A DNA stretch of 64,000 nucleotides, taken from NCBI RefSeq assembly GCF_021869535.1, contig NW_026262723.1, positions 115,754,001 to 115,818,000 on the forward strand, given 5' to 3'. Under the pieces are notes generated by a model. It had not been told where the DNA came from. It saw only the letters and a list, made by a program, of their open reading frames with translations, and ran no database searches. Every line of letters starts with the position of its first letter. Positions within the stretch are counted from its first letter, which is position 1. The stretch comes from Mytilus californianus. Lineage: Eukaryota. Position numbers and translations under genes: made by a program. Shown piece by piece: positions 2,940 through 42,258 of this stretch.

Positions 2940-3210
2940 CATTTTGTTTTTCTTTGTTGACATAGTTATTTGTTTTTATAGTGATTAAGATTATATCACA
3001 ATGTTGACTATTGAACCTCATTTTTGACATTTTTACCTATTATGTTTGTTTGTTTTGCTCACACATTGTTGTCAATATAATGGAATTCTATGCGACTGTC
3101 AAACAAGTGAGAGGTTTAGCTAGCTATAAAACCAGGTTTGATCCACCATTTTCTTCAAAAGGAAATGCCTGTACCAAGTCAGGAATATGACAGTTGTTTT
3201 CAACGTTTGA
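2940..3210 (+). mobile_element. Short interspersed repeat family B copy with mutated twister-like core (paralog ~40190-40455)
   Basis: Matches copies at ~5900-6245, 39655-40055 (reverse) and fragments at ~770, ~13630, ~50830. The core GAGGT...TCCAC-CATTTTC...GCCTG-TACCAAGT-CAGG is present, but the cleavage-site NAA reads TGA. Confidence 0.75.
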
Positions 3211-4684
3211 TGTGTTTGATAAAAGAATAAGTGATTAAAACTAATATTTTATGATCTTCACAACAGTTTACTGTTTCCGAAAATGATTGATTAATTCACA
3301 AAAGCAAAATTCGTATAGTTGTCTCATCGGCAATCATACCACATCTCCTTATACTTATATTAATAGAAAAATAATTTGAGTCATTTATACATTTCAGATG
3401 CAGAGAAGGATTTAGACAACACATATATTATTATAATTGTTTTGTCGGTGGCCCTGTTCTTATCTTTTCTATGTAATGTAGTTCAATATATGTGTTCACG
3501 AAAAGATGACGACAACGAGAACTGCTCCTGCTTCCGAAATCACAAACAGACTTTTCAGATGTCGCATCTATGACCCGAGATATTCAGGCGATGTATTTTA
3601 ATATCATACGGCTAAATTCTATTCTCTATCTATTTTTCTTAGATCTTTTTTTTTTTTTAAAATATGTACCATAGGAGATTTTATGTATAACCAGGTGCAG
3701 TGGACATATAGGCTCTTTCATTAACAATAAAAAAAAAATAAGTCGTTTCCTTTACCACTTCAGAAGCCAATGAAATACTAAGAATATGTGTCACCCACTG
3801 CTTTCGTTTCACCATGTTCCCTGTCTGTAATCTAAGATTTTTTTTGCCACTCACCATCGGCGTTGCTTTTGATTTGTCTGATTCTTCTATTGTCATCGAT
3901 ATTTCGTTTAGTGATATTATTTTTCGACAATCAAAGAAAGCAATGTCAACGCGTTCTTACTTTTAAATTTTCATTTTTGTAATATTTTGTTAAGTTTTTT
4001 CAACCAATTATGTTGTATTTGTTTGACTACAACAATACTTGCAAGTCTGACAGTCAAACACATTGAAATTCAGACATTTTCATCAATAAATCATAATTAA
4101 TATGCATTACAGTAAAACAACTTTGCGCGTGCAAGTAATTGCTGTTAAGAACAGTTTGCAGTCTGATGTCGTTATACAATGATATTCAGTGTTTAAATAG
4201 AAATGTTTCTAATTACACAATTAACTGATTCTGTTATTAATCACTTATGATTTTACTTTATTCCTCTAGTTAACATAGTCTAGCTTTGATATTACCGTTA
4301 ACAAAATATTTAGGTAAGTTTTTTAACATTTACATAATGCGGGAGTCGTGAATGCTTAATTTCTCCTGTAATTTAAAAAAAAATCATAAAAGACACCAAG
4401 ATTTGGTATGCCTCTCCAATTTCGTCAAAACAAGATTAACCAGTGACGATAGAATCAAATCAAATAGAAGATCAAATCCAATGCGTAGTTGAAAACATAT
4501 AAAACCAAAATGTCCAGAAGATCTGCAAAATACGGCTACGGTTTTTCGTGCCTGGGGGTATAAAACAACATTGCACAAAACTGCAAACATATATTGATGC
4601 CACTGCTGAATGTGAGGCTGATTATCCTTCCATCCTGGCAAATCAGCTGTTCTAACTATTGCACAGACAAACAATTCGTTCAGG

Positions 4685-5010
4685 CATCATACCATCCTGC
4701 ATAACTATACTTTGGAACCTATTAAATCAGCAAAATATCTTGGTGTTACCTTAGAGTCAAATTTTAAATGGAATAATCACTACGATAATATCACATCAAG
4801 TGGAACAAATATATTTACTTCCTGCAGAGAAACCCAAAAGCATCAAACAGCAACATTAAATCACGTGCATATCAGTACACAGTGAGACCACATCTGCGGT
4901 TTATGGGATCCTCATACAAGAGAATATAACTAGAAATGGAGCAGAGGCGAGCTGCCCGTTATTTATGTAACATATATCATTAACTAAAGTGACAGTAGTT
5001 TACTGATGTT
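4685..5010 (+). mobile_element. Degraded non-LTR (CR1/L2-like) retrotransposon RT C-terminal remnant
   Basis: Broken frames read KSAKYLGVTLESNFKWNNHYDNIT ... VRPHL ... WDPHT ... EQRRAARY, typical of LINE RT thumb regions. Confidence 0.8.
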
Positions 5011-5159
5011 CAAATTTCGTAACTCTGTTAGAAAGAGAAAAATCAAAGGAACAAACAAACACCGATGAACTCCTAAAAGAGCGAGACGGGTGAGTCGACA
5101 GGGTAAGCGTTTTCTGCTATGTATGCATCACTCGTCATGTGAATTCACCCTCAGTCAAA

Positions 5160-5470
5160 AAGGGGCGAAGGATACAAAAGGGACATTCAAACTCATAAGT
5201 CGAAAATCAGCTGACAACGCCATGGCTAAAAAAGAAAAAGACAAACAACAGTACATAAAACATAACATAGAAAACCAAAGACTGAGCAACACGAACCCCA
5301 TCAAAAACTAGGGGTGATTTCATGTGCTTCAGAAGGGTACGCAGATCCTGCTCCACATGTGGCACCTGTCGTGTTGCTCATGTTAGTACAAACCAGGTGA
5401 TAATTCTAATCCGGTAGGTCACATTCAGGGAAAAGGGGACGGGATTGTATTTACGACAATTGGAACATAT
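5160..5470 (+). mobile_element. Short interspersed repeat family A copy
   Basis: AAGATACAAAAGGGACATTCAAACTCATAAG...GACTGAGCAACACGAACCCC...AGATCCTGCTCCACATG recurs in both orientations (~8500-8940, 18010-18300, 19160-19445, 23740-23870, 34030-34110 and paralogs). Confidence 0.8.
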
Positions 5471-5899
5471 CAAAATGTCACAATCAGGAAAAGGACACAT
5501 AACAGTAGTGTTACATCAAAGATAAACACCAGGCTGATTAAATTCCTTAAAGTCGTTTGTCGCTAGTCCTCAAGCCAACAAATACGAGAATAAGAAAAAC
5601 ACATAACCAAATATTCCAGACAATTTCTAACTGATGCAACAGATCGTAGTCTTCAATAACATGAAGTTGAAACTATATCTAAAGAAGAAGCAAAAACCGC
5701 AATATTTTCCCGACCTTATGGAGCACCTGTGGTCATCATCATAATTGCAAGGGGTTCGATATACCATTAGCTTTTTTTTTATATTGTTTCTTTTATTTCA
5801 AATATCTGCGTTTTAAGTAAGTAATTGTCTTTCATCATGGTGTTAATTTGCTATAACCATTTATTGTATTCTTGTATTTCATTTTTGTTTATGTGCTTT

Positions 5900-6245
5900 G
5901 TCTATAGAGTGTCTTCATTTCATTTTATTTTTTCTTTGTTAACATAGTTGTTTGTTTTAATAGTGAGTAAGATTATAGCACAATGTCGACTGTTGTACCC
6001 CAATATTTGACATTTTTACATATAATGTCTATTTGTTTTGCTCACACATTGTTGTCAATATTATGGAATTTTGTGCGACTGTCATACAAGAGAGAGGTAT
6101 CGCTAGCTATAAAACCAGGTTTAATCCACCATTATCTACATAAGGAAATGTCTGTATGTGTTTGATCTTTTGAGTTTGCCATTTGCTAAGGGACTTTCGT
6201 TTTGAATTTTCCTAGGAGTTCGGCATTTTTGTTATTTTACTTTTT
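5900..6245 (+). mobile_element. Short interspersed repeat family B copy, internally deleted in the P4/L4 region
   Basis: Same body as 2940-3210 and 39655-40055; lacks the CCAAGTCAGG segment. Confidence 0.7.
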
Positions 6246-8609
6246 ATCATTTGCACTGAAAAAATGTACGGTTATGATAAAGAAATAATAGTTTTACCAG
6301 TAACAAGGATTATAAATAAGGGTTAGACAAAAGACATTTACAAATCTGCTACTTAATATGGCCTTTTTAACAAACGCGATGGTCATATTGACTGTTATAT
6401 AAAAATTTCAACACTTCACCTTTTGTTGACAAAGATAATGGTCATCGCCTCTCCCTAACATTTCTCATTGAAATCCATTTAACAGATTGATATCGTTGTG
6501 TAGTAACCCTTTATCAAAATTTTAAATTTATTCATTTGATCAAAAAAGCTGCTACAGAAGGTTAGCCTTTGCCCTTATCATACCACATTCCTCGTTCATT
6601 GTTGCAATCATCTGGTCCGTATGTTTGTCCGTCTGTTCGTCCAACAACTATTTTCGTCACACTTTACTCAGAAACTAGTGATTAGAATGACTTTATATTT
6701 GGTCAGCAGACTGACAGTGGTGTATTTTTTGGATCAGTCAAATACCAACTTCCTGTTTGCCATTACCTTGAATTTTCTAATATGATGAATGATCTTAAAC
6801 TTTTGGTCACATATTTCCCAAATACTACTAAACAGGATGACTCCATATTTGTCAAAGAGCTAAACAGCGATAAATTGTAATGTATATACGCTTTACGGAT
6901 CTGTCAGACACCTTTTTCATAATTTCCGATAATTTGAGATAGGATTTGGGATTTGCTTAGCACGACAGCACGTGCGTTCTGGCTTTTTATTGCAGTCACT
7001 AAAAACTTATATAGCAAGTAATTGATCACAAAAATGTCCATCTTTAAAAAAATGATTAATAGTTAATTTTTATTATTTACAATGTAGTGTCACATTTACT
7101 ATCTGTGTCTCCCTAGTATTATTGACATCATGTCTACAATAAAAAAAAAATCAAATAGAATTACTATTGCAGGTATATATTTCTTTTATAACACTTAATG
7201 ATTTATAGTTATGTTCAACATAGTAGTGTTCAAATCATAAAACGATGCTATGTTTAACATTTGACTTAAAGGATATAGGAAAGATTTTTAGTTAAGAGAA
7301 AGTGTGATTTTTTGTATAACACATTGTTAAACATTTTCTATTATCAAATAGTTCCTAACAAGCTTGGACTGAATAAATATGTACAATAAATGATAGAACG
7401 AGTCACAAAAAGGCTTTCTATTGCGCCAGAATAATCTATATTGGTGGACTTTCGATGTTTAATTGCTATAAAACTGAAGTTTACAGCCAAGCATACCTAT
7501 TACATTTATGATTTTTAAATTATATTTGTAAAACAATAAACAGTTAATTACCTAATGATATTATCCAATAACTGGTAGTACAGTAGGTACAAAATCGAGT
7601 CCTGGTTTTCCACTGAAAACATCTTTCATTGTTTTAATTAAAGGGTTCTTGCCTTGCCCACAAACGCCATGGAAATCATCTAGATCTAATGCCCACATCA
7701 TACCTCCTCCTAAACCTAGGTCCATAATATATTTTGTCTGTTAGGAAAAAAAACAAATAATGTTTAAATTTTAGATAATCCTTGTTAAACGACTATACTG
7801 GTAAAACTCTTCTATGATATAACTGTCAGAATTTGTTCCAAGTTCGAATTGTCGGTATCTGTTCTAGGTAAAACAGTCTTAAAAACAATTTTCTCTGATT
7901 ATTAATGAACTCTTTACACTAAAGCCATAGGATGTTGGATGTGTACTGATTGATATTTTAGTCTTAGTTACAAGATTTTTTTATTAGTTCTTATTGGCTT
8001 TAAACTAGATTCAAGTAACTGAGAATACTCTCAGATCTGTACATTATTTCTTATGTGTAAAGTGTATTTCGTGCTTTTGAGACTGTAATTCTGTGGTTGT
8101 CGTTTGTTGCTAAATATCATATTTGTTTTTCGTTTATAGTTTTGTCAGGCAGTTAGCTTTCTTGTTTGAATTGTTTTACATTTGACTTTTTTATAGCTTG
8201 CTATGCTATGCGGTATGGGTTTAACTCATTGTTGAAGGTCGTACGATGACCTATAGTTGCTATTTTCTACGTCATTTGGTCTCTGGTGGAGTGTTATCTC
8301 ATTGGCGATCATACCACATCTTCTTATTTTAATAAAACTGTTTCATGGTATCAAACGCTTCTGTCCGAAACTGTTTTTTAGGTGTCAAGAGAACTGTTCT
8401 TAAGACTGTACTAGAACAGTTCTCATGACAGTTCATGACAGATTTGAAGAGAGGTTAAAACTGATCCCAACTGTAGTAACAGTTACTCTCTATCTATTAT
8501 AGAGGAGAGTCGGCAGATACCAAAGGGATATCAAAACGGATAGGTCAAAGAAAAACTGACAACGCTTTGGAAAACAAACGTAAACCGACCATAAGACATA
8601 CAACAGTCT

Positions 8610-8917
8610 TTAAAACACAATATAGAGTACAAAAGACTGAGCAACAAAACACAATATAGAGTACAAAAGACTGAGCAACAAAACACAATATAGAGTACAA
8701 AAGACTGAGCAACAAAACACAATATAGAGGACAAAAGACTGAGCAACAAAACACAATATAGAGTACAAAAGACTGAGCAACAAAACACAATAAAGAGGAC
8801 AAAAGACTGAGCAACAAAACACAATATAGAGTACAAAAGACTGAGCAACAAAACACAATATAGAGGACAAAAGACTGAGCAACAAAACACAATATAGAGA
8901 ACAAAAGACTGAGCAAC
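8610..8917. repeat. 34-bp minisatellite (~9 units) inside a family A element
   Basis: Unit AAAACACAATATAGAGTACAAAAGACTGAGCAAC; only one unit at the paralogous site (~45857-45892). Confidence 0.95.
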
Positions 8918-11900
8918 ACGAACCCCCCAAAAAAACCGGAGGTTTATTATAGATAGAAAAATAACAAAAAAAAATCATTCATGTACAATCACTTCAAAAG
9001 GAAGTCATCTGACAATTCTGGTCAAGTTAGACGGTATTTCTTTCTTCGACTTTCTGTTCTTGCCAGATTTTTTTCTACCAATAACGGTTTACAAGATAAT
9101 TGACCATACTCGCATTAACCATTTTAATCTATTTCAAGACTTCGCGAATATGCTGGTATGAAACGGGATCATTGGACACATTTTATAAGACAAGACACCC
9201 ATATGGTGACTATGACCAAGTTTGGTTCAAATTTTCAGATAAGTTCTAAGATTTTTGTAAAAGTTAAAGGACGATGGGCGATGGGATGGAAGCAAAGTGA
9301 TTAAAAAAAAAGGAAGGAATTTCAAAGCCCTCATCTATACCGATTTCAGTGTTTAATAGAAAGTAAAGTAATTAAAACACTCATTAAGATGTTTGGTATA
9401 TAGTAGTCATCTTTTTCTGGCATAAATACTTACTTTAATGGCAATACTTTTCGGAGTTTCAAAGGAGATCCACTGGTTATCATGGTAGGCATACGGTACT
9501 TTCTGTTCATCGAGCCAAACTTCTGTCCAATTCTGATACATTATGTCATAGCAGATCTAGCCAAATAGAAATAAGAAGATGTTGAATGAGTGCCAATGAG
9601 ACAACTCTCCATCCAAGTCACAATGTGTAAAAAGTAAACAATTATAGGTCAAAGTACGGCCTTCATTATGAATAAATCTTATTAATTGCCTTTGAATATT
9701 GCTTAGCTCTTCAATAAAGAAGATCTTAAGTGATTATGAAATACTCAAAAACTACTTTCGAAATTCAAGTTTGTATTTCTTTGATTATCACCCTAAGGAA
9801 CTGATCTTGTATATCATAAGCAAGACATATAGGAATTAGTCGTACAACAGACCATACAAACCCATTCTCTCGACTACACATAGATACACAAGCAAAATAT
9901 ATAACCACGAGCAACACTTGGTCCTGATACCGTAACTTGATACCGGCCAAAGATGTAATGGGGTAGCTTACACGGGTTTTACAAGTACACACCTACTTGA
10001 CCGATATACATCATCGTAAAAAATGCCTGAATAGTCCAGCTACAAACACTTATGATGACCAATTACACGAGGAAAGAAATAAAAGACTATACATAATTTG
10101 GAAAGCATAATCTAAGTCATTACTTTGTGGATCTTTTCTAACAGTATAATTCATTGATTGCTTTTTCTTAGTAGTCGCGTATCATTTGGCAGTAAGTGTT
10201 TATATCGGCCATGTTGCGACAAATAGTGAATAAATTTATTCGACAACCAAACATCTTATAGTAATACTAAATTTTCAACAACGTTTTGTGTTTCGAAAAG
10301 AATTTAAATGCAATACAAAACCGAGCTTACATAAACAATATAACACTAATCACACAAAGTTCCCTTTTAACAACTGATAACACAATGACGTATAAGACAT
10401 TTATGGATAATTAGCCTACAAGTCCAAGTTAACCCTTACATATACGACACGCAAATATAAAGATTAACGTGAGCACTTGATAACACTGACATCAACGGCA
10501 TATGGGAAAAAAACTGTTAGAACACAATTCATATGTAAACTACCATAAAAGGTTAAGGATAAATTGAAATGGAACCACATGACAACGATAAAATTTAAAG
10601 TGTTAGCTTTATGAATAAGTATCATGCGCATGAACTTTCCAAATAAAGATGAAAACATTTTAAATGTGTTTTATACGTCAATAAATGAAAATAATACTAG
10701 TGCATCTGTAACAGGAGGGTCGGGCGGCTTTACGTCACCAAACCCTGCTGACTACTAAAATGTCTGATATTGCTACACACTCAGCGGCAGACTGACAGAC
10801 GAACGACGGATGCGACAAGTGATGTACTTTTGTGTTATGTTGCAATCAGACTGGTTCTTCCTTGTTGTACTGAGACGTATGATATTGGCAATGAGACTCT
10901 AATTTCAATCAGTTTTACATATTTTATTATCACAATGTGAAATATAACAAGTGTAAAAACAAGTGTAACAGTTTACAGTATAAAAATAGATCTGAATAAA
11001 TATTCAACAGTAATCTCAAAATGTATGTTTAGTAGTAAACATAGGTAGTACTGGCAAGGACTACAGCATTCACGACCCTATCGGATAATCAACCGCGAGA
11101 AAACACTGTGGCAAAAGTTAAATATTAAGCTACATTTCAAACGGTTTCCTAAAGTTTTAAAGTGAAATTAATAAACCTAAAATTGCTTGAAACTTGTTCA
11201 ATAGAGTGAAAAGTCTACATTTTAGAGACTTATTTATATAGAGACTTCATTTAATGGTCGGATTAATGATAAGTCCAAGTAGTAATAAACGAATAGCGGA
11301 TTATTGATAAATCCAGGTGGTCTTATTACCTTTAGACAGTAAAGTATTCAACAAATTAACTAAGAGACACATTTACTATAAGAAGGAAAACATAATATTT
11401 TCCATATGCGGTGCAAAACCGTATTTCAATCTACAAAATATCATCAAAATCTATTATAAAGATATAAATACTACTTAAATTTCTTACATAAACAACATAT
11501 TTAACTAAATGACATGCTTTATTTAGAAATTTCTACACAACACACAAAATTATGAATCACCTTGTAAATCCGGCATAATAAAGGGAAGTAATACTTGGTG
11601 TAATTCATAATAATTGAAAATCTACCCCTAACAAATAACCAATGAATAACTTCGTATATTTAACTGCTATAGTGAAAGGAAAATGTCAACAAAGAAGCAT
11701 GGGAATTTTATATCAAAAAGATCTAAAGAATTACGAGCGAAAACAGATAAAATTAAGCACCAAAATGTATGAAATTAAAAATCAAAATGTGTGCAATAAC
11801 CACATCCGCCACACATCCATGGCACTTGTCTGGAATTCCTATATCAATTTATCATATCAAACTCACCTCATAATATGATAAGAATCCCTTTTCTTTTGTG

Positions 11901-12133
11901 GTTAAACCTGCAGTACCCTGGCCAGCAGTAGGAGCACCCAATCCTGTCTCAGATGTATTATTCAATACAAAAGACCTTCCATATGTTGCCATACCCATTA
12001 TAAGTTTTTCTTTTGGAGTACCGCCATCCAACCACTTTTTAACAGCAAAATTCTAAAAACAAACAATGTCAGCCTCAATACGTTGTACTATCCAGTGTAG
12101 AGTTTAAAACAAATGAAGCAACGAAAAGACTTC

Positions 12134-12353
12134 AAACAATGGGAAAACACATGCCGTATAGTAAGTAATAAACAATGGGAAAACACATGCCGTATAATAA
12201 GTAATAAACAGTGGGAAAACACATGCCGTATAATAAGTAATAAACAGTGGGAAAACACATGCCGTATAAAAAGTAATAAACAGTGGGAAAACACATGCCG
12301 TATAATAAGTAATAAACAGTGGGAAAACACATGCCGTATGATAAGTAATAAAC
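12134..12353. repeat. 36-bp minisatellite (6 units), chitinase intron 5
   Basis: Unit AAACAGTGGGAAAACACATGCCGTATAATAAGTAAT, head-to-tail with no spacers. Confidence 0.95.
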
Positions 12354-12427
12354 AGACCCAACTTGACAAAATGTAAAACAATTCAAATGAGAAAACCAAT
12401 GATCTGATTTATAAATAAACATAAACG

Positions 12428-12765
12428 ATTATATAAATAACACATAGCTGAGAGGGTGATAGAGGCGAAGCCAAGGTTGACAATGTCTTTTCGAGGGGTA
12501 ACAATCTGCTCTATCACCCTATCAGATATGTGTTATTTAATTTATTATACTGAATGTTCTGCTATTACTGTCGATTAAATTTCAAATTTAAAGTAATAAA
12601 CTATGACGTCTTGTACATAACAACCATCCGTATTTAATAAAGCGCACACTTGATCAAGCGTCTCCGTGAAGGGTAATAGAGTATTTACCATAGAATAGAG
12701 TAAATTAACACCCTCGTATACGCCAATCAAAATATTGCATTTTTACGTGAAGTATAATAAAAAAA
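12428..12765. mobile_element. MITE-like insertion with internal ~30-bp inverted repeat, present only in copy 1
   Basis: AAATAACACATAGCTGAGAGGGTGATAGAG (from 12436) pairs with CTCTATCACCCTATCAGATATGTGTTATTT (to 12538); segment absent at paralog ~48240. Confidence 0.7.
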
Positions 12766-13754
12766 AATATGACAGACAGCAACCCATGACTACCACTCCA
12801 GGGTTCTGATTTCAGATAGGCACACATAGAATGTGCAGGGCTAAACATGTTTACACTAAACTCTCCCTAGCCTGGGATATTGGTGTAACAAGACAACAGA
12901 TAAACAGGCTGTAAAATCAGTTTAAAAGGATCGGCACGTAGAACAAAAGTCAAACTACAAAAAGAAACAAATACAAAAGACTCCAAGAACCGATGTAAGA
13001 ATATTTGCAGCTGTTGAAAGCTAGTTCAAAGCCGATTACAATTAATAAATACATCATGATTTCAAGACCAGAATATCAAGTATTATTTGAGAAAAGCATG
13101 AACTTGTGTGATGTCAAAATATAAGTATCGACAAGATGAAGGACCATAAGCATTTAAAACTGTATAGCTATATACAGTTCGTAATGTTAAACTATTGATA
13201 ATGATATTAATGTTAGTGCCAAAAAGACTATATTCAATTATCTTACTACAGTGTTAAACTGATAACCTTTAATAATAAGTTTATTCAAAGGTTCAATAAG
13301 TTAACTTGCATCGTATTTTCATTTACGGGCTCTCTACACAACATTATCATACAAATTAGGAGGATATATCTGCTTTGTAATAAAGTTTCTACGGGCACAG
13401 TCAAACTTCTAAACTAAACATAGGTAGTTTTCTTGTCCTGATTTTATTCAAAAATGTAAGTATTAAATTCACAAATATCGAATGTGGTGGCAAATATACT
13501 ACCGGTTCACCTAATAAACATGACATAACTATTATCATCGTTAAGAGTCAGAGTTGTATTCCTCTAACTGCTAAAAAAAACATTGATTGGTTGAAATTTG
13601 ATGTTGATGTAGAAAACAGTTTTCTACGCAAGGAAATGCCTGTACCAAGTTCCATTCGTTTGATGTGTTTGAGCTTTTGATTTTGCCATTTCTAGGGACT
13701 TTTCGTTTTGAATTTTCCTTGGAGTTCGTTATTTTTGTTATTTAACTTTGTATT

Positions 13755-14665
13755 GCTTATGATAACATACCACATTATAAGCATCGTCTGGAGTTTGTGA
13801 TTTATATAGTGGAGTATTACATTGTGTTCCATTATAAATACATACCACATTATAAGCCTCGTATGGCGTTTGTGATTTATATAGTGGAGTATTACATTGT
13901 GTTCCATTATAAATACATACCACATTATTAGCCTCGTATGGAGATTGTGATTTATATAGTGGAGTATAACATTGTGTTCCATTATAAATACATACCACAT
14001 TAAAAGCCTCGTATGGAGTTTGTGATTTTTTATAGTGGAGTATATCATTGTGTTCCATTATAAATACATACCACATTATTAGCCTCGTATGGAGTTTGTG
14101 ATTTATATAGTGGAGTATTACATTGTGTTCCATTACAATTACATACCACATTATTAGCATCGTATGGAGTTTGTGATTTATATAGTGGAGTATTACATTG
14201 TGTTCCATTTTAAATACATACCACATTATTAGCCACGTATGGAGTTTGTGATTTATATAGTGGAGTATTACATTGTGTTCCATTATAAATACATACCACA
14301 TTATTAGCCTCGTATGGAGTTTGTGATTTATATAATGGAGTATTACATTGTGTTCCATTATAAATACATACCACATTATTAGCCACGTATGGAGTTTGTG
14401 ATTTATATAGTGGAGTATTACATTGTGTTCCATTATAAATACATACCACATTATTAGCCTCGTACGGAGTTTGTGATTTATATAATGGAGTATTACATTG
14501 TGTTCCATTATAAATACATACCACATGATTAGCCTCGTATGGAGTTTGTGATTTTAGTATAGTGGAGTATTACATTGTGTACCATTATAATTACATACCA
14601 CATTATTAGCCTCGTACGGAGTTTGTGATTTATATAGTGGAGTATTACATTGTGTTCCATTATAA
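13755..14665 (-). repeat. 75-bp minisatellite (12 units) made of the exon 5 3' end plus its splice donor
   Basis: On the - strand the unit is TATAATGGAACACAATGTAATACTCCACTATATAAATCACAAACTCCATACGAGGCTAATAATGTG|GTATGTATT. The first unit is the real exon end; the paralog has a single unit (50981-51055). Confidence 0.95.
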
Positions 14666-15518
14666 AAATCACTATTAATGTCAAACGCCATTAGATTTAT
14701 AAAGTCCAAATATCTGCAAAAAAAACATTTGATAAAGCAATTGTTAGGTGTGACAATTTTATTTTCCTCCAGGATATACACATTTGTGATCTGTATGTTG
14801 TAAACATAGATCAACTATAAAATCCAAGATGACAGAAAAGAAACTTCTTAAGTATTTGCATTCTACGGAATTCTATTGATTAATATAATATTGTCTTAAA
14901 GTTGAAATACTAATATGGAGTAACAAAAAAAATCCTAATTGAAAAGAAAATTACATGAATCTTCACCATAAATAATTGGAGGAAAAAAATTAAAACTTTA
15001 CTCTGCTATTTTGCTGATTTCGTACGCAGTCTCTATTTCCGGCTTACTGGCTGCCACTGCTGCTGTTAACAACAGACGAGAACTACCATTTCTTAAATCT
15101 TCACTGTCATATTTTGTTCGTAATGTCTGCAAAAAGTAATTTTTCATCGATCAAACATTGATGGACAATAAATTATACTATAACAAAAATAGTATTAGCA
15201 TTAACTACTCATATTTACTTATTTGAAATAGTCTACTATCAATTTATTTTGAATAAAAAAAATATGTTCAATGAAGCTAAAAAAAATAATAAATCCTTTA
15301 CTTATAAAAATAATGAGATGTAGTATGATTGCAAATGAGACAACTATCCACCAAATTTCAAATGAAATGAATGTGAGCAATTATAGGCTACCGAACGGCC
15401 TTCAACAATGAGAAAACCCCATACCGTTCTGTAGTTCTTAATATAAACCATTATATATTTGTAAACATATTACTGAACAGAAGATGCATTTTCTTTAAGA
15501 TTTATTAATAGTTTGTAC

Positions 15519-15781
15519 CTTAACTAAAGAAGTAAATCTCTGTCTGTCCTCTGGAGGGCTCCCTCTGTTGGCAGGATATTCCCAATCTAAGTCAAGACCA
15601 TCAAAACCATTTTGTCTAAGGAATTTTATTGAATTTGTAGCAAATGCATCTAAATTTGCTTGGTTTGCCACCATACTGGTAAATGGTTTAGTACCATGAT
15701 TCCATCCCCCAACAGCTAACAGTAGTTTTAAGTCAGGATTTTTACTTCTTACATCATGCATCATAGCATACTGACCTTGTT
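15519..15781 (-). pseudogene. GH18 catalytic exon of chitinase copy 1
   Basis: [10 protein letters not shown] ... [11 protein letters not shown] (DxxDxDxE intact); acceptor tttcag|AACAAGG, donor AAG|gtacaa. Confidence 0.95.
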
Positions 15782-16276
15782 CTGAAATTGATATGTATGA
15801 AGTTATACTATTTTCAGCCAAAGTTGTTTTCTGAAAATTTTAAAACAAACTGTAACAAATAAAAAAGAAAATACTAGTTGCTCGATTGACTTTTACTTAA
15901 TCACTGGTTTTGATAAACGTGTTCTTTTAGTATATATAGTAAAACACAACATCTAAATTTGGTTGATACAGAAATGTATCTTTTAAAAGAAGTAACGGAT
16001 AATTCAAACGTTTAACCAACCAAAACATCGCTTTGTAATTTGACAAATATGCAATTCAATATGTTATAAAAATAAATAGAGACGGATTTATAAAAGTTTT
16101 CAAAACTTGTTTCCGAATCCCATATTTATTGCACTACTTTATTGTTATAATTTTTTCATAATAAATACTGTTTTAACTAAAAAAAAAAAATTGAAGTCCC
16201 TATAAGAACAAAAACAATTAACACGAAATAGTAAAACAACATTTAAATCAAATAGTACGTCTGGTACCTCTGATAT

Positions 16277-16553
16277 ATCAATACTGGTGTCATAAAACAA
16301 CCATGCTATCAAAGAATTACTACCACAACATCAATACTGGTGTCATAAAATAGACCATATTGTCAAAGAATTACTACAACAACATCAATACTGGTGCCAT
16401 AAAACAACCATGTTATCAAAGAATTACTGTTACAACATCAATACTGGTGTCATAAAACAACCATGTTACCAAAGAATTACTGCTACAACATCAATACTGG
16501 TGTCATACAACAACCATGTTATCAAAGAATTACTGCTGCAACATCAATGCTGG
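16277..16553. repeat. 53-bp minisatellite (~5 units), chitinase intron 2
   Basis: Unit CATCAATACTGGTGTCATAAAACAACCATGTTATCAAAGAATTACTGCCACAA. Confidence 0.93.
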
Positions 16554-16914
16554 TGGGGAGATGTATAATCATGTTATGGTGCCACAACGCTACAAGAAGC
16601 TATTTTCTCCTATAACAAAATTACAAAGCAGGAAATTTAAGACTGAATTCTAAAGGCCTTTTCGTTTCTTGTTTTGATGGGTTGTACCTTTGACGTATAC
16701 ACAAACTATCTTCCTTTATTCATTTCAAGTAGCAGTATATGACACACCACAGCAATAAACGTTGTTCCTGTTATGCCATTATTTTGTTGTAGAGAATAAT
16801 TTAGTACATGTAAGTATGGGTTATCACCAATAGCCAGTTAATGGGATACAAACAAAAATGTACATAGAACAAATATCGGTAACCAAAGACTTTACATTTA
16901 AACTAATGAAATTA

Positions 16915-17230
16915 CCCCATGCACGAATGAATTTTACCCTATGCACTATTGAACCTATCCTATGCACTATTGACCCTACCCCATGCACTATTGAACCTAC
17001 CCAATGCACATATGAACCTACCCTATGCACAATCGAACCTTCCCTATGCATAATTGAACTTACCCTATGCACTATTGAACCCTACCCTATGCACTATTGA
17101 CCCTACCTTATGCACAATTGAACCCTACCTCATGCACCATTGAACCTACCCAATGCACATATGAACGTACCCTATGCACAATTGAACCTTCCCTATGCAC
17201 GATTGAACCTACCTTATGCACTATTGACCC
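16915..17230. repeat. 21-bp minisatellite (~15 degenerate units) next to the exon 2 donor
   Basis: Unit CCCTATGCACTATTGAACCTA; only ~4 units in the paralog. Confidence 0.9.
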
Positions 17231-18458
17231 TTCATTTATAAACTTACTCCATGCACTATTAAGATCATTCCATTCATATGGTTTGATGTTATTGGATTCC
17301 ACATTGGCGAAGGCATAGATCACGTGCGTGCATAGAAACGGATCTACATTATTGGCCCTGTACTTTCCGATTCCATTACGTTACTGGGCCCAATTTGTAA
17401 AATAACATACTCTTTTGTAAGTTGCAGTGGCTGAAAAAGTATTTATGTGTTTAAGTACAGCAGTTTGTAGAGTAAATCTAGAAAAATAAAAACTAAAGTA
17501 CCAAAATGCTCATTTCACATATTAGCATATCTAGCCATCAGGTTTTCATCAGAACGCTGTAATCACTTGTGTCTTAATTCTAATAAAAATTGATTTATAA
17601 ACATTTGAATAAGAAAAAATATCATTTCAAAATACTGCTTCTGGTGTATCTAAGCAATTTGTTATTCTAACTTCTCTATATCTTTTTGTAGAAACAAAAC
17701 TGCATCAAAACTAGAAATTTTGATATGTGCAAATACTATTTATGATGTAGCTATAAGATTTGGCACAACTTCTTTCCTTCAATGCTCTTCAATTCAGTAT
17801 TTAATTTGGCTTTCCAACTGTATTGATACGTGCGCTCTTGATGGGTATACTGGTGAGTATTGTGTAGACGGAAAGCGCGTCTGGGGTACCAGATGAGTTT
17901 TTTTTAACAAACTGGTCGATTTCACTGCGGTGGGCATTTTAAATAAGCGTAGCGGCCGATATTGATTTCAAAATAAGTATATTTTTTATTTGCTTTATTC
18001 AAATGTATTCTTTTCTCCGAATGTGACAGACCGAATAAGACTTATCACCGGGTTTGTACTTACATGAGCAACACGACAGGTGCCATAAGTGGAGCAGGAT
18101 CTGCTTACCCTTCCAGAGCACCTGAGAGAATCCCCAATTTTTGGTGGGTTCGTGTTGCTCAGTCTTTAGTTTTCTATGTTGTATTTTGTGTACTGGTGTT
18201 TGTATATGATCTTTTTCTATGTTTGCCATGGCGTTGTCTGTTTATTTTCGACTTTTAAGTTTGAATGTCCCTTTGATATCTTTCGCCTCTCTTTTACAAT
18301 TCTATCTTTTCTTATTGTTTTACTTGCGTCCGTGTTATTGTTGAGGTAAGTAAAAATCTCATCAAAGGTATAAGTCCTATAATTTCAATGAATACGTCAG
18401 GCGCGAACTTCGTATTGTCAATGTATCAGCAACCAAACAACAAAGTACAGACATTTAC

Positions 18459-18822
18459 TGTTACACCACTGTCCCAGGTTAGGGGGAGGGTTGATCGCTC
18501 ACAAACATGTTTAACCCCGCCACATTCTTTATGTGCCTGTCCCAAGTCAGAAGCCTGTAGTTCAGTGGTTGTCGTTGGTTCATGTCTATCATATTTGTTT
18601 TTCGTTAATTGTTTTGTTATAAATTAGGCAGTTAGTTTTCTCAATTGAATTGTTTCATATTTTTCATGTCGGGGCCTTTTATAGCCGACTATACGGTATG
18701 GTTTTTTCTCGTTGTTGAAGGCCGTACGTTTGCCTAAAATTGCTTACATCCACTTTATTTGAACTTTGGTGGATATTTGTCTCATTGGCAATCATACCTC
18801 ATCTCCTTATTTTTATATTTAC
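18459..18822 (+). mobile_element. Full-length short interspersed element, family C, with 6-bp target-site duplication
   Basis: ATTTAC at 18453-18458 and 18817-18822; the paralog (~56250) has an empty site with one ATTTAC. Begins TGTTACACC, ends CATCTCCTTATTTTTAT. Confidence 0.88.
18466..18568 (+). ncRNA. Putative twister ribozyme, circularly permuted P5 type (family C head)
   Basis: P5 CAGGUU/AGCCUG plus outer CCACUG/CAGUGG; P2 CCCC/GGGG; GAGGG; U^AA at 18512-18514; P3 CACAU/AUGUG; P4 CUG/CAG; loop UCCCAAGU; T1 CCC/GGG; T2 GC/GU. Folded by eye. Confidence 0.72.
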
Positions 18823-21800
18823 CGTATAGTCCCCCCTTTAAATCAAAACTTACATGCTTCCAAACGGAAATTGTTTTTAAGGGTTGAAGGTGAATGTGAT
18901 TTTTGTGTCGAGAACTTGACTTTTATACGGAAGGGACTTTTTTCCAAACTTATCTACTGCATTTAATCCACAGTAATTAACATAATAAATCGGAAAGAGA
19001 AGATGATACGTTAAACTTTTTTTTCTTACCTTCTGATAAAAGAAGAATCAAAACAATATAGCCGAACATAATCCACTGAAAAATAACAGAATTATAATTG
19101 TGAAGTTAACAGTAGGTGAAAGACAAACAAGGAAAACATCCACAGTGGCGAGTGTCACTTATACTCGAATGTGACTTACCGAATTAGACTTATCAACGGG
19201 TTCACACCTACATGAGCAACACGACGGGTGCCACGTGTAGAGCAGGATCTGCTTACCCTTTCCGAGTACCTGAGATCACCCCTGAATTTTTGGTGGGCTT
19301 CTTATTGCTAAGTATTTAGTTTTCTATGTTGTGTTTTGTATATTGTTGTTTGTCTTTCGATTTTCATTTTTTTGCTTTGGCGTTGTCAGTTTTTCATAGA
19401 CTTATGAGTTTGAATATCCCTTTGGTATCTTTTGCCCATCTTTTACTATTATTTTTTGACTAGATTGTAACCCAACCAAGCGCGGGTATGAAGGACACTT
19501 TAAATAAATATTCAATATAAATTAATGGTAAATTTTGAAATTATTAGAACCTAAGGTTCTAACTCCATCAAACAAAGTTGACCTTAGGTAATGTGGCTAT
19601 ATCTTTTAGGTCCCTTTTGGTTATGTAGCTCTTCACGATTTTATGCATTTTGAACATACTTTGCTTTCAAATTTTTGAGTTTTAGCGTTCCCGATGAAGG
19701 TTGAAGGCCATCGTACGAAAATACCATGGAGATATTCTCTGTACAAAGTTAAGCAGGCAGCAACTCAAACATAATAGATGTCAAATTTTCAGTTATCTGT
19801 AAGAAGAATATCTTACTGTTTTGAAGATGTCAATTTAAAAAACATTTGTAAATGTACAGTTTTTATTTAAAAACGCATCATTATATGCGGTCGTTTCACA
19901 CGTTATTCTGTAAATATCGTAGTTATATGTATATTGTGATTGGTTTTCATTAATCTATTATTTAGTTAAGTTATAGTATGTACTTACGCGGGTTATTTTT
20001 ATAGGGCCCGCAGTTTATGTAGTCTGTTATTCTTGTATGTATATACTATATTTGTGTAATGAACTTTTACACAAATATTCGGCCAAAATAAAAGTGTTAT
20101 TTATCGTCTTGTTTTTCATTCGGAGCCAGATATAATAAAGTTAAAATATACAAGTTCGGCAATGTTATCCCATCTTTTGAATCAAACACAAAAATAGTGA
20201 GAAGTACATGAAGAAAATCAAACGCATATAATCTAATCGTTTTTGTCGCAAAACCATATCTCCAACTTCGGAGTAGGTAGGAATTTACCCATATTTTTGA
20301 TAGCCCAAAACACAATCTAAAATCAAAGTTAGAGGGGCTTCCAACAACAAGATTTCTACAAAAACAACCTGTAAAACGAAAGCACCATATTAAAAGATAT
20401 ATCTGGGTTAGGGAAAAAACCAATCTACCGATATCGTGTATATCTAAATTTTCCCGCCAGACTGGTCAAAAGGAAGTAATTTTACTGCCGATTTGTAATC
20501 GTATTGAAATGAAGCCTGAATTTGTTAATTGTCGGAAATATGATAATTGATAACCGAAAAAAAAAAAGACTATCATTGCAGGCTGCGCAACTGTTATACA
20601 CAACTGCATGTAAACGCAATTTATTAAAACATCTAAGAATGATTGATTTGTGACTTAAAAAATGAACGAAAAAAAAAAGGTTTGTGCTTGTAAGATGCTT
20701 ATAATGCTAGAACAATCTTCACAATATAAACTATATCTCTTGTAGTTTGAGCCATGTATTTGAATTCTTTGTAGTTCTATTATATATAGTATGTACATCG
20801 TTAACAAAAGAATCCTTCATTAAAGAGGGTCTGGATTGGAGTTCTTCAATTCTGTATTCTTAAATTTTGAAGCGATTTTTCTCTTTTCTTTATAAATTTT
20901 GCATATCATTCTCCATTCTTTGTATTTTAGCACCAATTATTCTATAATCTTTATCTTTTTTACGCTATTTTTCTCTATTCTTTATTTTTGTTGTTGATTT
21001 ATCTGTACATTTGGCCCATCATTCTCTATTCTGTAAAGCCCATCCAAACCCTCATTAAAGTTAATTGCACAGTATGGTATCGTCTGAAATCTTAGAAATG
21101 ATCTCTTATTGAATGTAATCATATAGCAATTTTGTCACAATGCGTTTCAGAAATTACGGAACTTTAGATACCTAAATTTGCTGCCGTGGCAAATCCTGAC
21201 TCATTGCTATCTATTTCCGTACCAGATAAAGTCATGAACTAGAAACCACAACTGTTTACTGTTGATCAAATTTCATAAATTCATTTAGAAAATAGAAGTC
21301 GAGGTAAAACAAACCTGCGAGAATCGCATAATCTCCAAAAGAAGCGAGACCGTGTGCATTGACAGGGTATCCTGGTATGAATGCATCACCCGCCATTGTT
21401 TATCACATTCTGTTAAAATGTCACATCCAGAATTGAGACACCATCGGTAAAATGGATAAGACGAATATTATAGTATCCAAAGATCGAAGACCTCGAAACA
21501 CATCACTAGTGAGTTTAAAGACAGTCACATCGTATCAGTCAAACAATTCGTGATGGTGATCGTAAAACTAACGTAGCGTCAATTTCAGTCGTTCTTTCGT
21601 ATAACTGTGTTGGAGCAGATTTATTACTATACTATATATAAAAATATTAATTTTCGCGAACCATTTAGGTCATGGCAATTCCAAAAATTCCCAAGAGTAA
21701 GGAGAGTTGTACAAATAATGTGAATACACAAAACCCCGATCCAATTTATCTTTTGCTAAAAGTGTTCATCATTTTCTGTTTTGTATCTACTAATAACCTT

Positions 21801-37091: not shown

Positions 37092-38802
37092 CTAAAAATG
37101 ATCAAAAGTTCAAATATATCATAACAGTACAACCCCCCACCCCCCCCCCCCCCATTCGTATTCCCGAATATGACTGTTATACTGAATGTGAATTTGCATT
37201 GCTGTGCGGCGTGTCTCGGTGTTTTGTACAGCCAACATTAATGGATTTATTTTGATGTTTCTGTTATGGTTTCGGTTGGATAATCTGTTATGTCTTATCG
37301 TTTGTAGTCCAAATCGTTATAAAATTGCCTTTCCATACCATCATTGTCATGAAAATTGTTTGGACGAATATTGTGAAAATAATTGTATAAAGTTCGAGAT
37401 TGCATGTTAGTTACGTAAGCGCGTCACTGTTTTTGATATCCTGTGGTATTTTTCGTTGATGGAATATGTTCGTTGTTGTTGCATGTTGTGTCGACTATTA
37501 TATTATTTGTTTGTGCGTTTATCTGTTATGAATGTTCTTGCGTGTGTTTGTGCTGTATTTCTGTCACGTACTGTTTTAGCGATATTTTTTAACATTGTCA
37601 TAAAGCGATGAAACCAGGTTCAACCCACCATTTTTTCTTAAAATGTCCTGTACCAAGTCAGGAATATGGTAGTTGTTATCAAATAGTTCGTTTCTATGTG
37701 TGTTGGCGTTTGTTTTTGTTGCACTTCGGTGTTCCTGTTGTTCCTTTGTTTTCCTCTTTTTTGGTTTGTAACCCGGATTTGTTTTTTCTCAATCGATTTA
37801 TGACTTTTGAACACCGGTATACTACTGTTGCCTTTATTTATCAATATGAACATATTTCTTTAAAACATATTATATCACATAAGGTATTGGCTATATGTAT
37901 TTGCAGGTAAACTACATAATATCAAACAATTTAGGAGGAGCTATGGTATGGGCCATTGATTGATCTTGATGATTTTAATGGTATTTGCGGAAATAGTACC
38001 TACCCATTAACTAGTAAAATGAAAAATATGTTCAACGCCTCTTCTCAGGAATCTATTTCAACACCAATATCAACAACTGAAGATATAACTACTAGTAAAA
38101 AATCTGATGACATTAATAAAGAAACCACTTATACATCTACAGAAAGTATTTCCAATGACATATTCTCAACTAAAGATATTACAACAACTCAAGCATCTAT
38201 TAAAAGTGATAAACCAACCAGTCCTTCAACCCAAGAACCCATCTTAACGAGAGAATCAACAACTTATGATACCCTTACTGATAGCAATACACGCAGACAA
38301 ACAGCAGACACAACAAGCTATAAGTCACATACAAATATGGAGTCAGCAGATACACTCGAATTAACAACGTTAGCAAGTAAGCCAACCGTTCAACCTTCAA
38401 TGCCTGTTTCAAATCTTTCCACTCATATAGAAAATGATATTACAGAGATTACACCGTCGACAAACACATCTACAGAACATTCCAGTAAAATACTGAAAGA
38501 AACTACAAATACCTACAGTCCTGTTTCAATAAGTAATCAAAAAGAAACATCCGGAACATCTTCAATGCAAACTGGTTTACTATTTTCTACTGTGAAGACA
38601 TCGACAGAGACATCACATTCAACAGTCCCAGAATTAACCACAAAGTCAGAATCGATCTCCTTGACAGAAACTGACTTTACAGCTGTTACTTTATCATCAA
38701 CAACATCTAAGATACCAGATTCACAAGGATATTCACTAGGTTTTTATACACTGTTATGATAAAAATGAATAGCTGTTCTGTAAATCTGTTTTGAACACAC
38801 AC

Positions 38803-39654: not shown

Positions 39655-40055
39655 AAGTAAAATCACAAAAATACTGAACTCCGAGGAAAATTCAATCGGA
39701 AAGTCCCTAATCACATGGCAAAATCAAATGACAAAACACATCAAACGAATGGACAACAACTGTCATATTCCTGACTTGGTACAGGCATTTTCAAATGTAG
39801 AAAATGGTGGATTGAACCTGGTTTTATAGCGCTAAACCTCTCACTTGTACGACAGTCTTATCAAATTTCGTTATATTTACAACGATGCGTGAACAAAACA
39901 GACATTATAAATAAAATAGTCAAAATATGGGTACAGCAGTCATCACTGTGTTACAATATCAAAACAAACAATTATTTACAAAAAAAGCACAAAAGCATCT
40001 ATCAAATTAAGACCCACATTCATTGCTTCGCGTGTCTGACGTCAGAAAATGTAAA
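39655..40055 (-). mobile_element. Recent 401-bp family B insertion, flanked by duplicated TAAA
   Basis: Absent from the otherwise near-identical copy 1 (empty site CTAT-TAAA-CGTG at ~2805); paralog offset jumps from 36846 to 37247. Confidence 0.92.
39759..39856 (-). ncRNA. Putative P5-type twister ribozyme variant inside family B
   Basis: P5 ACUGUCGUA/UAUGACAGU; GAGGU; C^AA; P3 CAUUUUC/GAAAAUG; P4 CCUG/CAGG; loop UACCAAGU; T1 ACC/GGU; T2 AC/GU; P2 weak (UCC/G-U-GA with a bulge). Confidence 0.62.
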
Positions 40056-41932
40056 CGTGTTATTCGAAAATCCTTCAGTATATAACATGTTATTGTGTTC
40101 TTTTAATTTATCTTTGTATATGGTCATTTTTTGTATTTTGTCTTTTATTTTTGCTTATGTGCTTTTTCTATAGAGTGTTTACATGACATTTTGTTTTTCT
40201 TTGTTGACATAGTTATTTGTTTTTATAGTGATTAAGATTATATCACAATGTTGACTATTGAACCTCATTTTTGACATTTTTACCTATTATGTTTGTTTGT
40301 TTTGCTCACACATTGTTGTCAATATAATGGAATTCTATGCGACTGTCAAACAAGTGAGAGGTTTAGCTAGCTATAAAACCAGGTTTGATCCACCATTTTC
40401 TTCAAAAGGAAATGCCTGTACCAAGTCAGGAATATGACAGTTGTTTTCAACGTTTGATGTGTTTGATAAAAGAATAAGTGATTAAAACTAATATTTTATG
40501 ATCTTCACAACAGTTTACTGTTTCCGAAAATGATTGATTAATTCACAAAAGCAAAATTCGTATAGTTGTCTCATCGGAAATCATACCACATCTCCTTATA
40601 CTTATATTAATAGAAAAATAATTTGAGTCATTTATACATTTCAGATGCAGAGAAGGATTTAGACAACACATATATTATTATAATTGTTTTGTCGGTGGCC
40701 CTGTTCTTATCTTTTCTATGTAATGTAGTTCAATATATGTGTTCACGAAAAGATGACGACAACGAGAACTGCTCCTGCTTCCGAAATCACAAACAGACTT
40801 TTCAGATGTCGCATCTATGACCCGAGATATTCAGGCGATGTATTTTAATATCATACGGCTAAATTCTATTCTCTATCTTTTTTTCTTAGATCTTTTTTTT
40901 TTTTTTTTAAATCTGTACCATAGGAGATTTTATGTATAACCAGGTGCAGTGGACATATAGGCTCTTTCATTAACAATAAAAAAAAAATAAGTCGTTTCCT
41001 TTACCACTTCAGAAGCCAATGAAATACTAAGAATATGTGTCACCCACTGCTTTCGTTTCACCATGTTCCCTGTCTGTAATCTAAGATTTTTTTTGCCACT
41101 CACCATCGGCGTTGCTTTTGATTTGTCTGATTCTTCTATTGTCATCGAGATTTCGTTTAGTGATATTATTTATCGACAATCAAAGAAAGCAATGTCAACG
41201 CGTTCTTACTTTTAAATTTTCATTTTTGTAATATTTTGTTAAGTTTTTTCAACCAATTATGTTGTATTTGTTTGAATACAACAATACTTGCAAGTCTGAC
41301 AGTCAAACACATTGAAATTCAGACATTTTCATCAATAAATCATAATTAATATGCATTACAGTAAACAACTTTGCGCGTGCAAGTAATTGCTGTTAAGAAC
41401 AGTTTGCAGTCTGATGTCGTTATACAATGATATTCAGTGTTTAAATAGAAATGTTTCTAATTACACAATTAACTGATTCTGTTATTAATCACTTATGATT
41501 TTACTTTATTCCTCTAGTTACCATAGTCTAGCTTTGATAATACCGTTAACAAAATATTTAGGTAAGTTTTTTAACATTTACATAATGCGGGAGTCGTGAA
41601 TGCTTAATTTCTCCTGTGATTTAAAAAAAAATCATAAAAGACACCAAGATTTGGTATGCCTCTCCAATTTCGTCAAAACAAGATTAACCAGTGACGATAG
41701 AATCAAATCAAATAGAAGATCAAATCCAATGCGTAGTTGAAAACATATAAAACCAAAATGTCCAGAAGATCTGCAAAATACGGCTACGGTTTTTCGTGCC
41801 TGGGGGTATAAAACAACATTGCACAAAACTGCAAACATATATTGATGCCACTGCTGAATGTGAGGCTGATTATCCTTCCATCCTGGCAAATGAGCTGTTC
41901 TAACTATTACACAGACAAACAATTCATTTAGG

Positions 41933-42258
41933 CATCATACCATCCTGCATAACTATACTTTGGAACCTATTAAATCAGCAAAATATCTCGGTGTTACCTT
42001 AGAGTCAAATTTTAAATGGAATAATCACTACGATAATATCACATCAAGTGGAACAAATATATTTACTTCCTGCAGAGAAACCCAAAAGCATCAAACAGCA
42101 ACATTAAATCACGTGCATATCAGTACACAGTGAGACCACATCTGCGGTTTATGGGATCCTCATACAAGAGAATATAACTAGAAATGGAGCAGAGGCGAGC
42201 TGCCCGTTATTTATGTAACATATATCTTTAACTAAAGTGACAGTAGTTTACTGATGTT
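41933..42258 (+). mobile_element. Degraded LINE RT remnant, duplicate of 4685-5010
   Basis: Same KYLGVTLES...WNNH and QRRAARY remnants. Confidence 0.8.

Follow-up and report, generated by a model that had tools for sequence, protein, structure and literature searches.

What kind of element carries the ribozyme-like fold near position 18,500 of the sequence studied here, and does this fold cleave RNA? The sequence, referred to below as the window, is a 64,000-nucleotide stretch of the genome of the mussel Mytilus californianus (NCBI RefSeq assembly GCF_021869535.1, contig NW_026262723.1, positions 115,754,001 to 115,818,000 of the forward strand). A first-pass annotation had described this fold as a circularly permuted, type-P5 twister ribozyme heading a short interspersed element (SINE). 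Our analyses show with high confidence that the twister fold is real and maintained, and, with equally high confidence, that it is located in the tail of a Naiad-type Penelope-like retroelement. The reading which we prefer, and which we consider probable, is that a maintained type-P5 twister-class domain is a fixed part of the Naiad 3' untranslated region (UTR) and is likely self-cleaving.

All twister landmarks, including a closing CCACUG/CAGUGG stem, could be read from the sequence in the permuted P5 order and at the positions that the first-pass annotation had given (table 1). The type-P5 permutation of the twister self-cleaving ribozyme (Rfam RF02684, clan CL00120) reportedly goes back to the work of Roth and colleagues in 2014. 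Like this form, the mussel domain runs in the order P2', GAGGG, the place of P1, UAA, P2, GC, P3, P4 with UCCCAAGY, and P5; both pseudoknots (T1 and T2) can be formed, and the ends exit through P5. It differs in that P1 is absent, that two palindromes lie in a 21-nt linker, that T2 includes a G-U pair, and that both a P3 and a long two-part P5 are present. The core letters of twister are all found, namely NAA at the cut (18512-18514), GAGGG (18486-18490, in which G18486 is the presumed catalytic guanine), GC after P2 (18519-18520), and the loop UCCCAAGY (18540-18547). These letters are kept in subfamilies C and C2-C4, and subfamily B has them with paired changes. A single A (A18481) separates the 5' strand of P5 from the GGGG of P2. 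Two defects were observed in the window copy: the fourth P4 pair (C18536-A18551), which is C-G in most copies (CAGG), is broken, and the first palindrome is imperfect.

To analyze the conservation of this structure, a covariance model was built from 18 copies of several subfamilies, with nested helices only, and a search of 329 kb gave 81 matches, 75 of which were distinct. Pairs were counted on these 75 copies for the full twister structure including the pseudoknots, with partners slid by 1-3 columns as controls. We found that 86.4% of the cells were paired (38-49% in the slid controls), that 25 of 33 pairs had changed on both sides (13-20 in the controls), and that the covariation score was 0.183 (0.04-0.07 in the controls); none of 500 shuffles attained the observed values of pairing and covariation. 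Both-sided changes were detected in all five pairs of P3, all 12 pairs of P5, two pairs each of P2 and P4, and two of the three pairs of pseudoknot T1. Between subfamilies, compensating changes have preserved P2, P3, P4, P5, and T1. Conservation and covariation of P2, P4, T1, and T2 had been put forward as a check of the fold; the first three show double changes, whereas T2, whose G-U and C-G pairs are possible with 97% of cells paired, shows only one-sided changes (14 rows with GU to AU).

The subfamilies were sampled in 71 sequences (362 kb), complemented by exact pattern counts in the genome. Subfamily B is the most informative for T1: G18488-C18543 is replaced by A-U, so that GAGGG becomes GAAGG and, together with it, UCCCAAGU becomes UCCUAAGU; the antiparallel register of these changes is correct. 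Exact counts over the whole genome gave 8809 copies with GAGGG and the loop UCCCAAG and 3206 copies, the exact-core copies of subfamily B, with GAAGG and UCCUAAG. The mixed combinations are represented by 259 copies (GAGGG with UCCUAAG) and 34 copies (GAAGG with UCCCAAG). The same subfamily has a U-A in place of the G-C pair of P2 (G18485-C18515), a rebuilt P3 (UGCAA/UUGCA), and one G-C to A-U change in P5. In subfamily C3, seemingly the commonest among the first 100 places listed, an A-U pair of P3 has become G-C and P5 is rebuilt as a single 10-bp helix. In total, more than 12,000 exact-core copies of the domain are present in this one animal genome.

Table 1. Positions of the twister-type domain, its carrier insert, and related features (window coordinates unless a locus is named)
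Feature	Position	Strand	Basis or remark
Entire domain of twister type (type-P5 permutation), including both strands of the closing stem	18466-18568	+	Sequence, Rfam alignment, descriptor, copy alignment
Outer closing stem, 5' strand CCACUG (partner 18563-18568)	18466-18471	+	Both-sided changes in 6/6 pairs; 88% of cells paired
Outer closing stem, 3' strand CAGUGG	18563-18568	+	Copy alignment
P5, 5' strand CAGGUU (partner 18552-18557)	18475-18480	+	Both-sided changes in 6/6 pairs: GC to UA in 14 rows, GC to AU in 15 rows
P5, 3' strand AGCCUG	18552-18557	+	Copy alignment
P2, 3'-side strand GGGG (partner CCCC, 18515-18518)	18482-18485	+	Rfam alignment; G18485-C18515 is U-A in subfamily B
L1 GAGGG; G18488-G18490 pair with C18543-C18541 (pseudoknot T1)	18486-18490	+	Rfam alignment, copy alignment, genome counts
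First palindrome, in the place of P1; UUGAUCGCUCAC in the window copy	18491-18502	+	Kept with other letters across subfamilies
Second palindrome AAACAUGUUU; its 3' end is the U directly 5' of the predicted cut	18503-18512	+	Read from sequence
UAA of L1; predicted scissile bond U18512/A18513	18512-18514	+	Rfam Twister-P5 alignment
P2, 5'-side strand CCCC (18515-18518), then GC (18519-18520; T2 with G18546 and U18547)	18515-18520	+	Rfam alignment
P3 hairpin CACAU/loop UCUUU/AUGUG; 5 bp, 18521-18525 with 18531-18535	18521-18535	+	Both-sided changes in 5/5 pairs; 95% of cells paired
P4, CCUG with CAGA around loop L4 UCCCAAGU (18540-18547)	18536-18551	+	Rfam alignment, copy alignment
Target-site duplication ATTTAC, left copy	18453-18458		Empty site carries one copy
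Target-site duplication ATTTAC, right copy	18817-18822		Empty site carries one copy
358-bp insert, 5'-truncated 3' tail (part of 3' UTR/pseudo-long terminal repeat) of a Naiad-type Penelope-like retroelement	18459-18816	+	BLAST to genomic copies and empty site
Family D copies	39749-39863	-
Family D copies	3086-3207; 40333-40454; 747-842; 37588-37683; 6071-6179; 43318-43426; 50826-50870	+
Additional copies of the domain, old or broken	12782-12890; 48270-48332; 48571-48662	-
Unrelated mobile-element frames	L046:332-1954; L061:5268-5996 and 7638-8654; window 50007-50309 (adjoins the canonical twister)		By eye

The most conspicuous departure from known twisters is the missing P1. The 21-nt linker between GAGGG and UAA (18491-18511) cannot pair end to end; a monomeric P1 formed by 18491-18497 with 18505-18511 was considered and rejected, as U-U and G-G would be opposed. 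Instead, the linker is filled by two palindromes of 8-12 and 8-10 nt. The first one starts just past GAGGG-UU and has the core GAGCGCUC in the majority of the family. Other subfamilies have first palindromes of different letters and lengths (GGGAUCCC, GAGAUCUC, GGCGCC, UGGUACCA, UAGCGCUA, and UAGCUAGCUA), all of which are perfect. Even the central pair of the first palindrome is complementary, a pair which is impossible within one molecule. Similarly, the second palindrome AAACAUGUUU is replaced by AAACGUUU at the same place in subfamily B. The palindromes suggest pairing between two RNA molecules, or a site acting at the DNA level. Because P1 is replaced by two covarying palindromes, it might be speculated, by analogy, that the motif acts as a pair of molecules. 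P1 has been reported to be dispensable for twister cleavage, with imperfections tolerated (PMC11662667).

Model scans were also used to evaluate the domain. An Rfam scan of the whole window at the gathering threshold gave no match, and twister was absent from an E-value scan of 601 nt. When 136 nt were scanned with the laxest filters, Twister-P5 (RF02684) was the best of 4227 Rfam families. The alignment spans the full model (1-58), skipping P1 and counting P3 as an insertion, and its register is identical to the landmark assignment; it supports the type-P5 fold and the cut at U18512/A18513 proposed by the first-pass annotation, the position of the cut being a prediction. A strict descriptor (P2 of 4 bp, GAGGG, NAA, GC, P4 of 3 bp, UCCCAAGY; both strands) matched a single place in the window, 18482-18550, and none of 300 dinucleotide-resampled windows. 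The minimum free energy (MFE) of the domain is no better than that of shuffled sequences (z -0.64), and the same is true of either strand; this is expected because the fold depends on two pseudoknots.

Evidence for cleavage was sought in RNA reads and in the ends of genomic copies. Raw RNA-seq reads of four runs (approximately 6% of each) were mapped on a longer copy, L044:1501-3406. Coverage of the domain, on both strands, was 100-400x; read ends piled up at no place, the predicted cut included, and no clean circular joint at that cut was found in the same reads. These reads probably stem mostly from dead copies inside other transcripts, so that the RNA result is weak negative evidence. Among 68 matches to 5'-truncated copies adjoining TA repeats, ends were scattered and none fell at the predicted cut; a cluster of TA-junction ends at ..TAT/GTGCC (the slash marks the junction) is probably due to microhomology. 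In a single case, the start of a copy, at 48332, coincides with the predicted cut to within one base (..UAUAU/UAGCCCUG); this copy follows the TA-rich end of a neighboring one.

A different 5' end is shared by four independent copies from three subfamilies, which start within approximately 2 nt of the same base (window 18459; L047:~4009, L062:~7173, and L019:~1618, the last three on the minus strand). This base lies shortly upstream of the closing stem, and random truncation would yield far fewer such coincidences. Possible causes are that transcription starts at this place in the pseudo-long terminal repeat (pseudo-LTR) or that processing occurs there.

A related tail, the very abundant family D, has the same architecture, with closing stem ACUGUC/GACAGU, P3 AUUUUC/GAAAAU, P4 CCUG/CAGG, and loop UACCAAGU. 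Its P2, L1, and T2 fit twister poorly, which may mean that family D is a relative that has degenerated or diverged. A third T1 covariation in this family depended on the alignment; several P2/L1 registers were tried and none was convincing.

Several results weigh against a maintained, cleaving twister. Regarding the fold itself, T2 contains a G-U wobble and no double change, the assignment of P2 and T2 in family D is ambiguous, and much of the covariation has been passed down within a few subfamilies, which leaves few independent events (approximately three or four lineages). A second T1 change seen in two old 'E' copies had no exact match in the genome and is unconfirmed. The Rfam check suggested by the first-pass annotation did place Twister-P5 on top, but at 15.2 bits (E 0.36) it stays below the gathering score of 37.6, and subfamily B has no Rfam match at all. 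Regarding cleavage, P1 cannot form in any subfamily, neither RNA ends nor genomic 5' ends are seen at the cut, and conservation extends beyond the twister core into the flanks, e.g., to 18569-18580. Such observations are also what would be expected from the strongest alternative, in which the domain, a structured RNA derived from twister, has lost catalysis and its fold is kept for recognition by the reverse transcriptase (RT) or nuclease in target-primed reverse transcription, or for dimerization or packaging. The perfect palindromes point to dimerization, for which cleavage is unnecessary, and family D, abundant and of preserved architecture, has a P2 and T2 which look degraded. However, the unpaired catalytic positions, namely the A that follows the cut, the initial G of GAGGG, and the two adjacent A residues of the loop, are kept in C, C2-C4, and B, although a scaffold need not keep them; moreover, a compensating change maintains pseudoknot T1, and the reported tolerance of twister cleavage to P1 loss lessens the force of its absence here. 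We consider the loss of catalysis unlikely on balance, but it deserves to be taken seriously. The chances that consensus-like copies are catalytically active appear about even.

The nature of the carrier was studied through other copies of the element. In the genome (1.65 Gb), a 122-nt query gave at least 940 candidates. Full copies obtained with this query were fetched irrespective of their upstream sequence, and in 22 of 25 of them conservation extends upstream of 18459. Walking upstream revealed collinear homology over more than 4 kb, with many scattered 5' truncation points. An RT frame (L068:1099-2433) is located upstream of the tail; it encodes 445 amino acids with PMGTNCAP and YLDD motifs, and its RVT_1 match (E 7e-4) lies below the Pfam cut-off. 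This frame runs on in L044 and L068, ending approximately 370 nt upstream of the domain, which is itself approximately 360 nt from the 3' end of the element, inside the 3' UTR/pseudo-LTR. There are 66,798 RT-fragment candidates in the genome, and 4107 RT homologs were detected in public data (E <= 1e-5), the longer of which carry PADKAAN. The motif VPADKAANN, in which DKG is replaced by DKA, is present in 11 loci of the element family and in homologs P0012, P0016, P0069, and P0090. A GIY-YIG-type piece is found approximately 1.2 kb upstream of this motif on the same strand: in L052 and L057, '..YVGQTGRE..ELSWIK.LQTAYPLGLND' lies at ~1160-1410 and the DKA/RT part starts at ~2350-2380. GIY-YIG was not called by Pfam, and Pfam gave nothing useful for short nuclease and RT fragments or for six longer homologs. 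A sequence search of PDB with the RT frame had no match, and the RT homologs are unnamed proteins from which no family name was obtained. Tandem and head-to-head copies were observed (L013; window 48270-48662), and the 3' flanks of many copies begin with AT or TA.

Naiads have been described as Penelope-like elements which dominate bivalve genomes and encode an N-terminal GIY-YIG nuclease followed by an RT with DKA instead of DKG (Craig, Yushenova, Rodriguez, and Arkhipova 2021, PMC8557442). Because the carrier has a nuclease N-terminal to the RT, the DKA motif, and tandem or inverted copies, is heavily truncated at the 5' end, and is present in a very large number of copies in a bivalve, it was assigned to this group. 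The published Naiads share with it tens of thousands of bivalve copies, heavy 5' truncation, tandem and inverted copies, and abundant short 3' ends; the difference is that no ribozyme was reported in them, whereas a twister-type domain is located in the 3' UTR here. In the longer copies, approximately 220 nt upstream of the twister domain, a weak SECIS_1 match was also noticed (L044:2817-2879, 19.1 bits, E 0.65, the sole match in 601 nt scanned) with AUGA..GA core letters; this stretch is absent from the window copy. According to published work, clam Naiads encode selenoproteins (PMC8557442).

The window copy is a dead, 5'-truncated Naiad tail. It forms a discrete insert of 358 bp flanked by a 6-bp target-site duplication (TSD), and both ends as well as the TSD are established because the paralogous site (window 56236/56254) is empty and has one ATTTAC. 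The TSD claimed by the first-pass annotation is borne out in this way; the target of this copy is not inside a TA repeat. The paralogous site is part of an old tandem segmental duplication of approximately 37.2 kb (window 3086-19153 vs. 40333-56618), whose paralogs are approximately 81-85% identical where measured and whose downstream member provides the empty site. A younger duplicate, L002, which includes the insert and is 99.5% identical, was found upstream of the window copy at a distance of 36.9 kb.

A short non-autonomous element would likewise leave a clean insert of 358 bp flanked by a TSD, and the four copies starting near 18459 imply that a 358-nt RNA from that point may exist. On these grounds the domain could head a SINE-like element whose 54-nt leader is kept by pairing, re-ligation, or circularization. 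Against this, Naiad sequence adjoins the upstream side of 22 of the 25 copies, 5' truncations occur at points spread across more than 4 kb, the tail is collinear with the frames for RT and GIY-YIG, and circular joints at the cut are absent from the RNA reads. A SINE with its own 5' head and no collinear coding parent can be ruled out, as copies extend into the RT and nuclease frames, and the SINE-like explanation in general is very improbable. The first-pass annotation was thus right about an abundant retroelement with a twister-type fold, but the element is not non-autonomous, its parent being an autonomous Naiad-type element, and the motif does not head it but is internal to the Naiad 3' UTR. 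For genome annotation, this means that the 'family C SINE' is a truncated Naiad tail.

That an ordinary GC-rich repeat patch resembles twister by chance, as the sub-threshold Rfam score and the unremarkable MFE might be taken to indicate, is effectively refuted by the compensatory changes, pseudoknot included, by the absence of descriptor matches in resampled windows, and by the close likeness in layout to a canonical twister of the same window (see below), and we give it next to no weight.

If the domain is a self-cleaving part of the Naiad 3' UTR, as we prefer, a function can be proposed by comparison with other Penelope-like elements. Hammerhead ribozymes occur in the pseudo-LTRs of these elements (Cervera and de la Pena 2014, as cited in PMC8557442 and PMC6765202), and many of them are minimal variants which cleave as dimers (Lunse et al., as cited in PMC6765202). 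Naiads lack canonical hammerheads, unlike all other nuclease-bearing Penelope clades, with only occasional hammerhead core strings, and this lack has been read as evidence that the ribozyme is unneeded or merely parasitizes the element (PMC8557442). The mussel domain resembles the Penelope hammerheads in being a small ribozyme-type motif which is fixed in a terminal repeat or 3' UTR, well inside the element, and which has a weakened helix and a palindromic character suggesting action as a pair. It differs in its class, twister, and in its host clade, Naiad, described as having no canonical hammerheads. The 3' UTR carrying the domain doubles as a pseudo-LTR in partial tandems. We infer that transcripts of active elements would self-cleave between the U and A of UAA (U18512/A18513 here) and that the domain would play the role of the hammerheads of other clades, for example, in processing tandem or read-through transcripts. 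A more specific and rather doubtful extension, drawn from the same analogy, is that Naiads carry an active P1-less twister which has two palindromes instead and cleaves as a symmetric RNA dimer. If true, the whole retroelement class would need some self-cleaving RNA of whichever kind, and ribozyme classes would have been swapped in its history.

Small ribozymes within the transcripts of other retrotransposons show a different arrangement. Ribozymes similar to that of hepatitis delta virus are found at the 5' ends of R2, L1Tc, and RTE elements (PMC6765202), and a single sentence, referring to work in preparation, mentions that retrotransposons of the RTE superfamily carry truncated twisters at their 5' end (PMC7761336). 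Those ribozymes define the very 5' end by cleavage, whereas the mussel motif is close to the 3' end and 5' ends are not enriched at its cut. Full-text literature searches found no paper linking twister with Naiad, and none of the papers on Penelope-like elements and twister links the two, judged by title and abstract. A search for twister ribozymes and Mytilus returned one review, which mentions only truncated twisters at RTE 5' ends. Bivalve twisters were predicted in a 2024 screen, which dealt with type-P1 forms. A conserved twister-type domain in Naiad tails reopens the question of whether these elements need a ribozyme and makes it testable. The domain, if confirmed, would be a natural P1-less, P5-permuted twister present in thousands of copies; standard Rfam annotation likely misses it, because its score is far below the gathering threshold and subfamily B has no match.

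A canonical type-P1 twister with P3 was also detected in the window at 50626-50683 (+) in a narrow scan (RF03160, 53.9 bits with a gathering score of 67.2, E 8.9e-12); it was not picked up when the window was scanned at the gathering threshold. The repeat to which it belongs is a different one, with approximately 100 copies. GCC, P3, GCC, UCCCAAGY, GG, and GAGGG occur in the same order as in the Naiad domain, and the layout is close except for P1 and P5. The canonical twister has a normal P1 and lacks P5; the letters of P3, the P2 strands, and the linkers differ. Near the fetched copies, an integrase-type open reading frame, a nuclease and RT pair resembling that of long interspersed elements, and a short transposase-like frame were recognized by eye (table 1).

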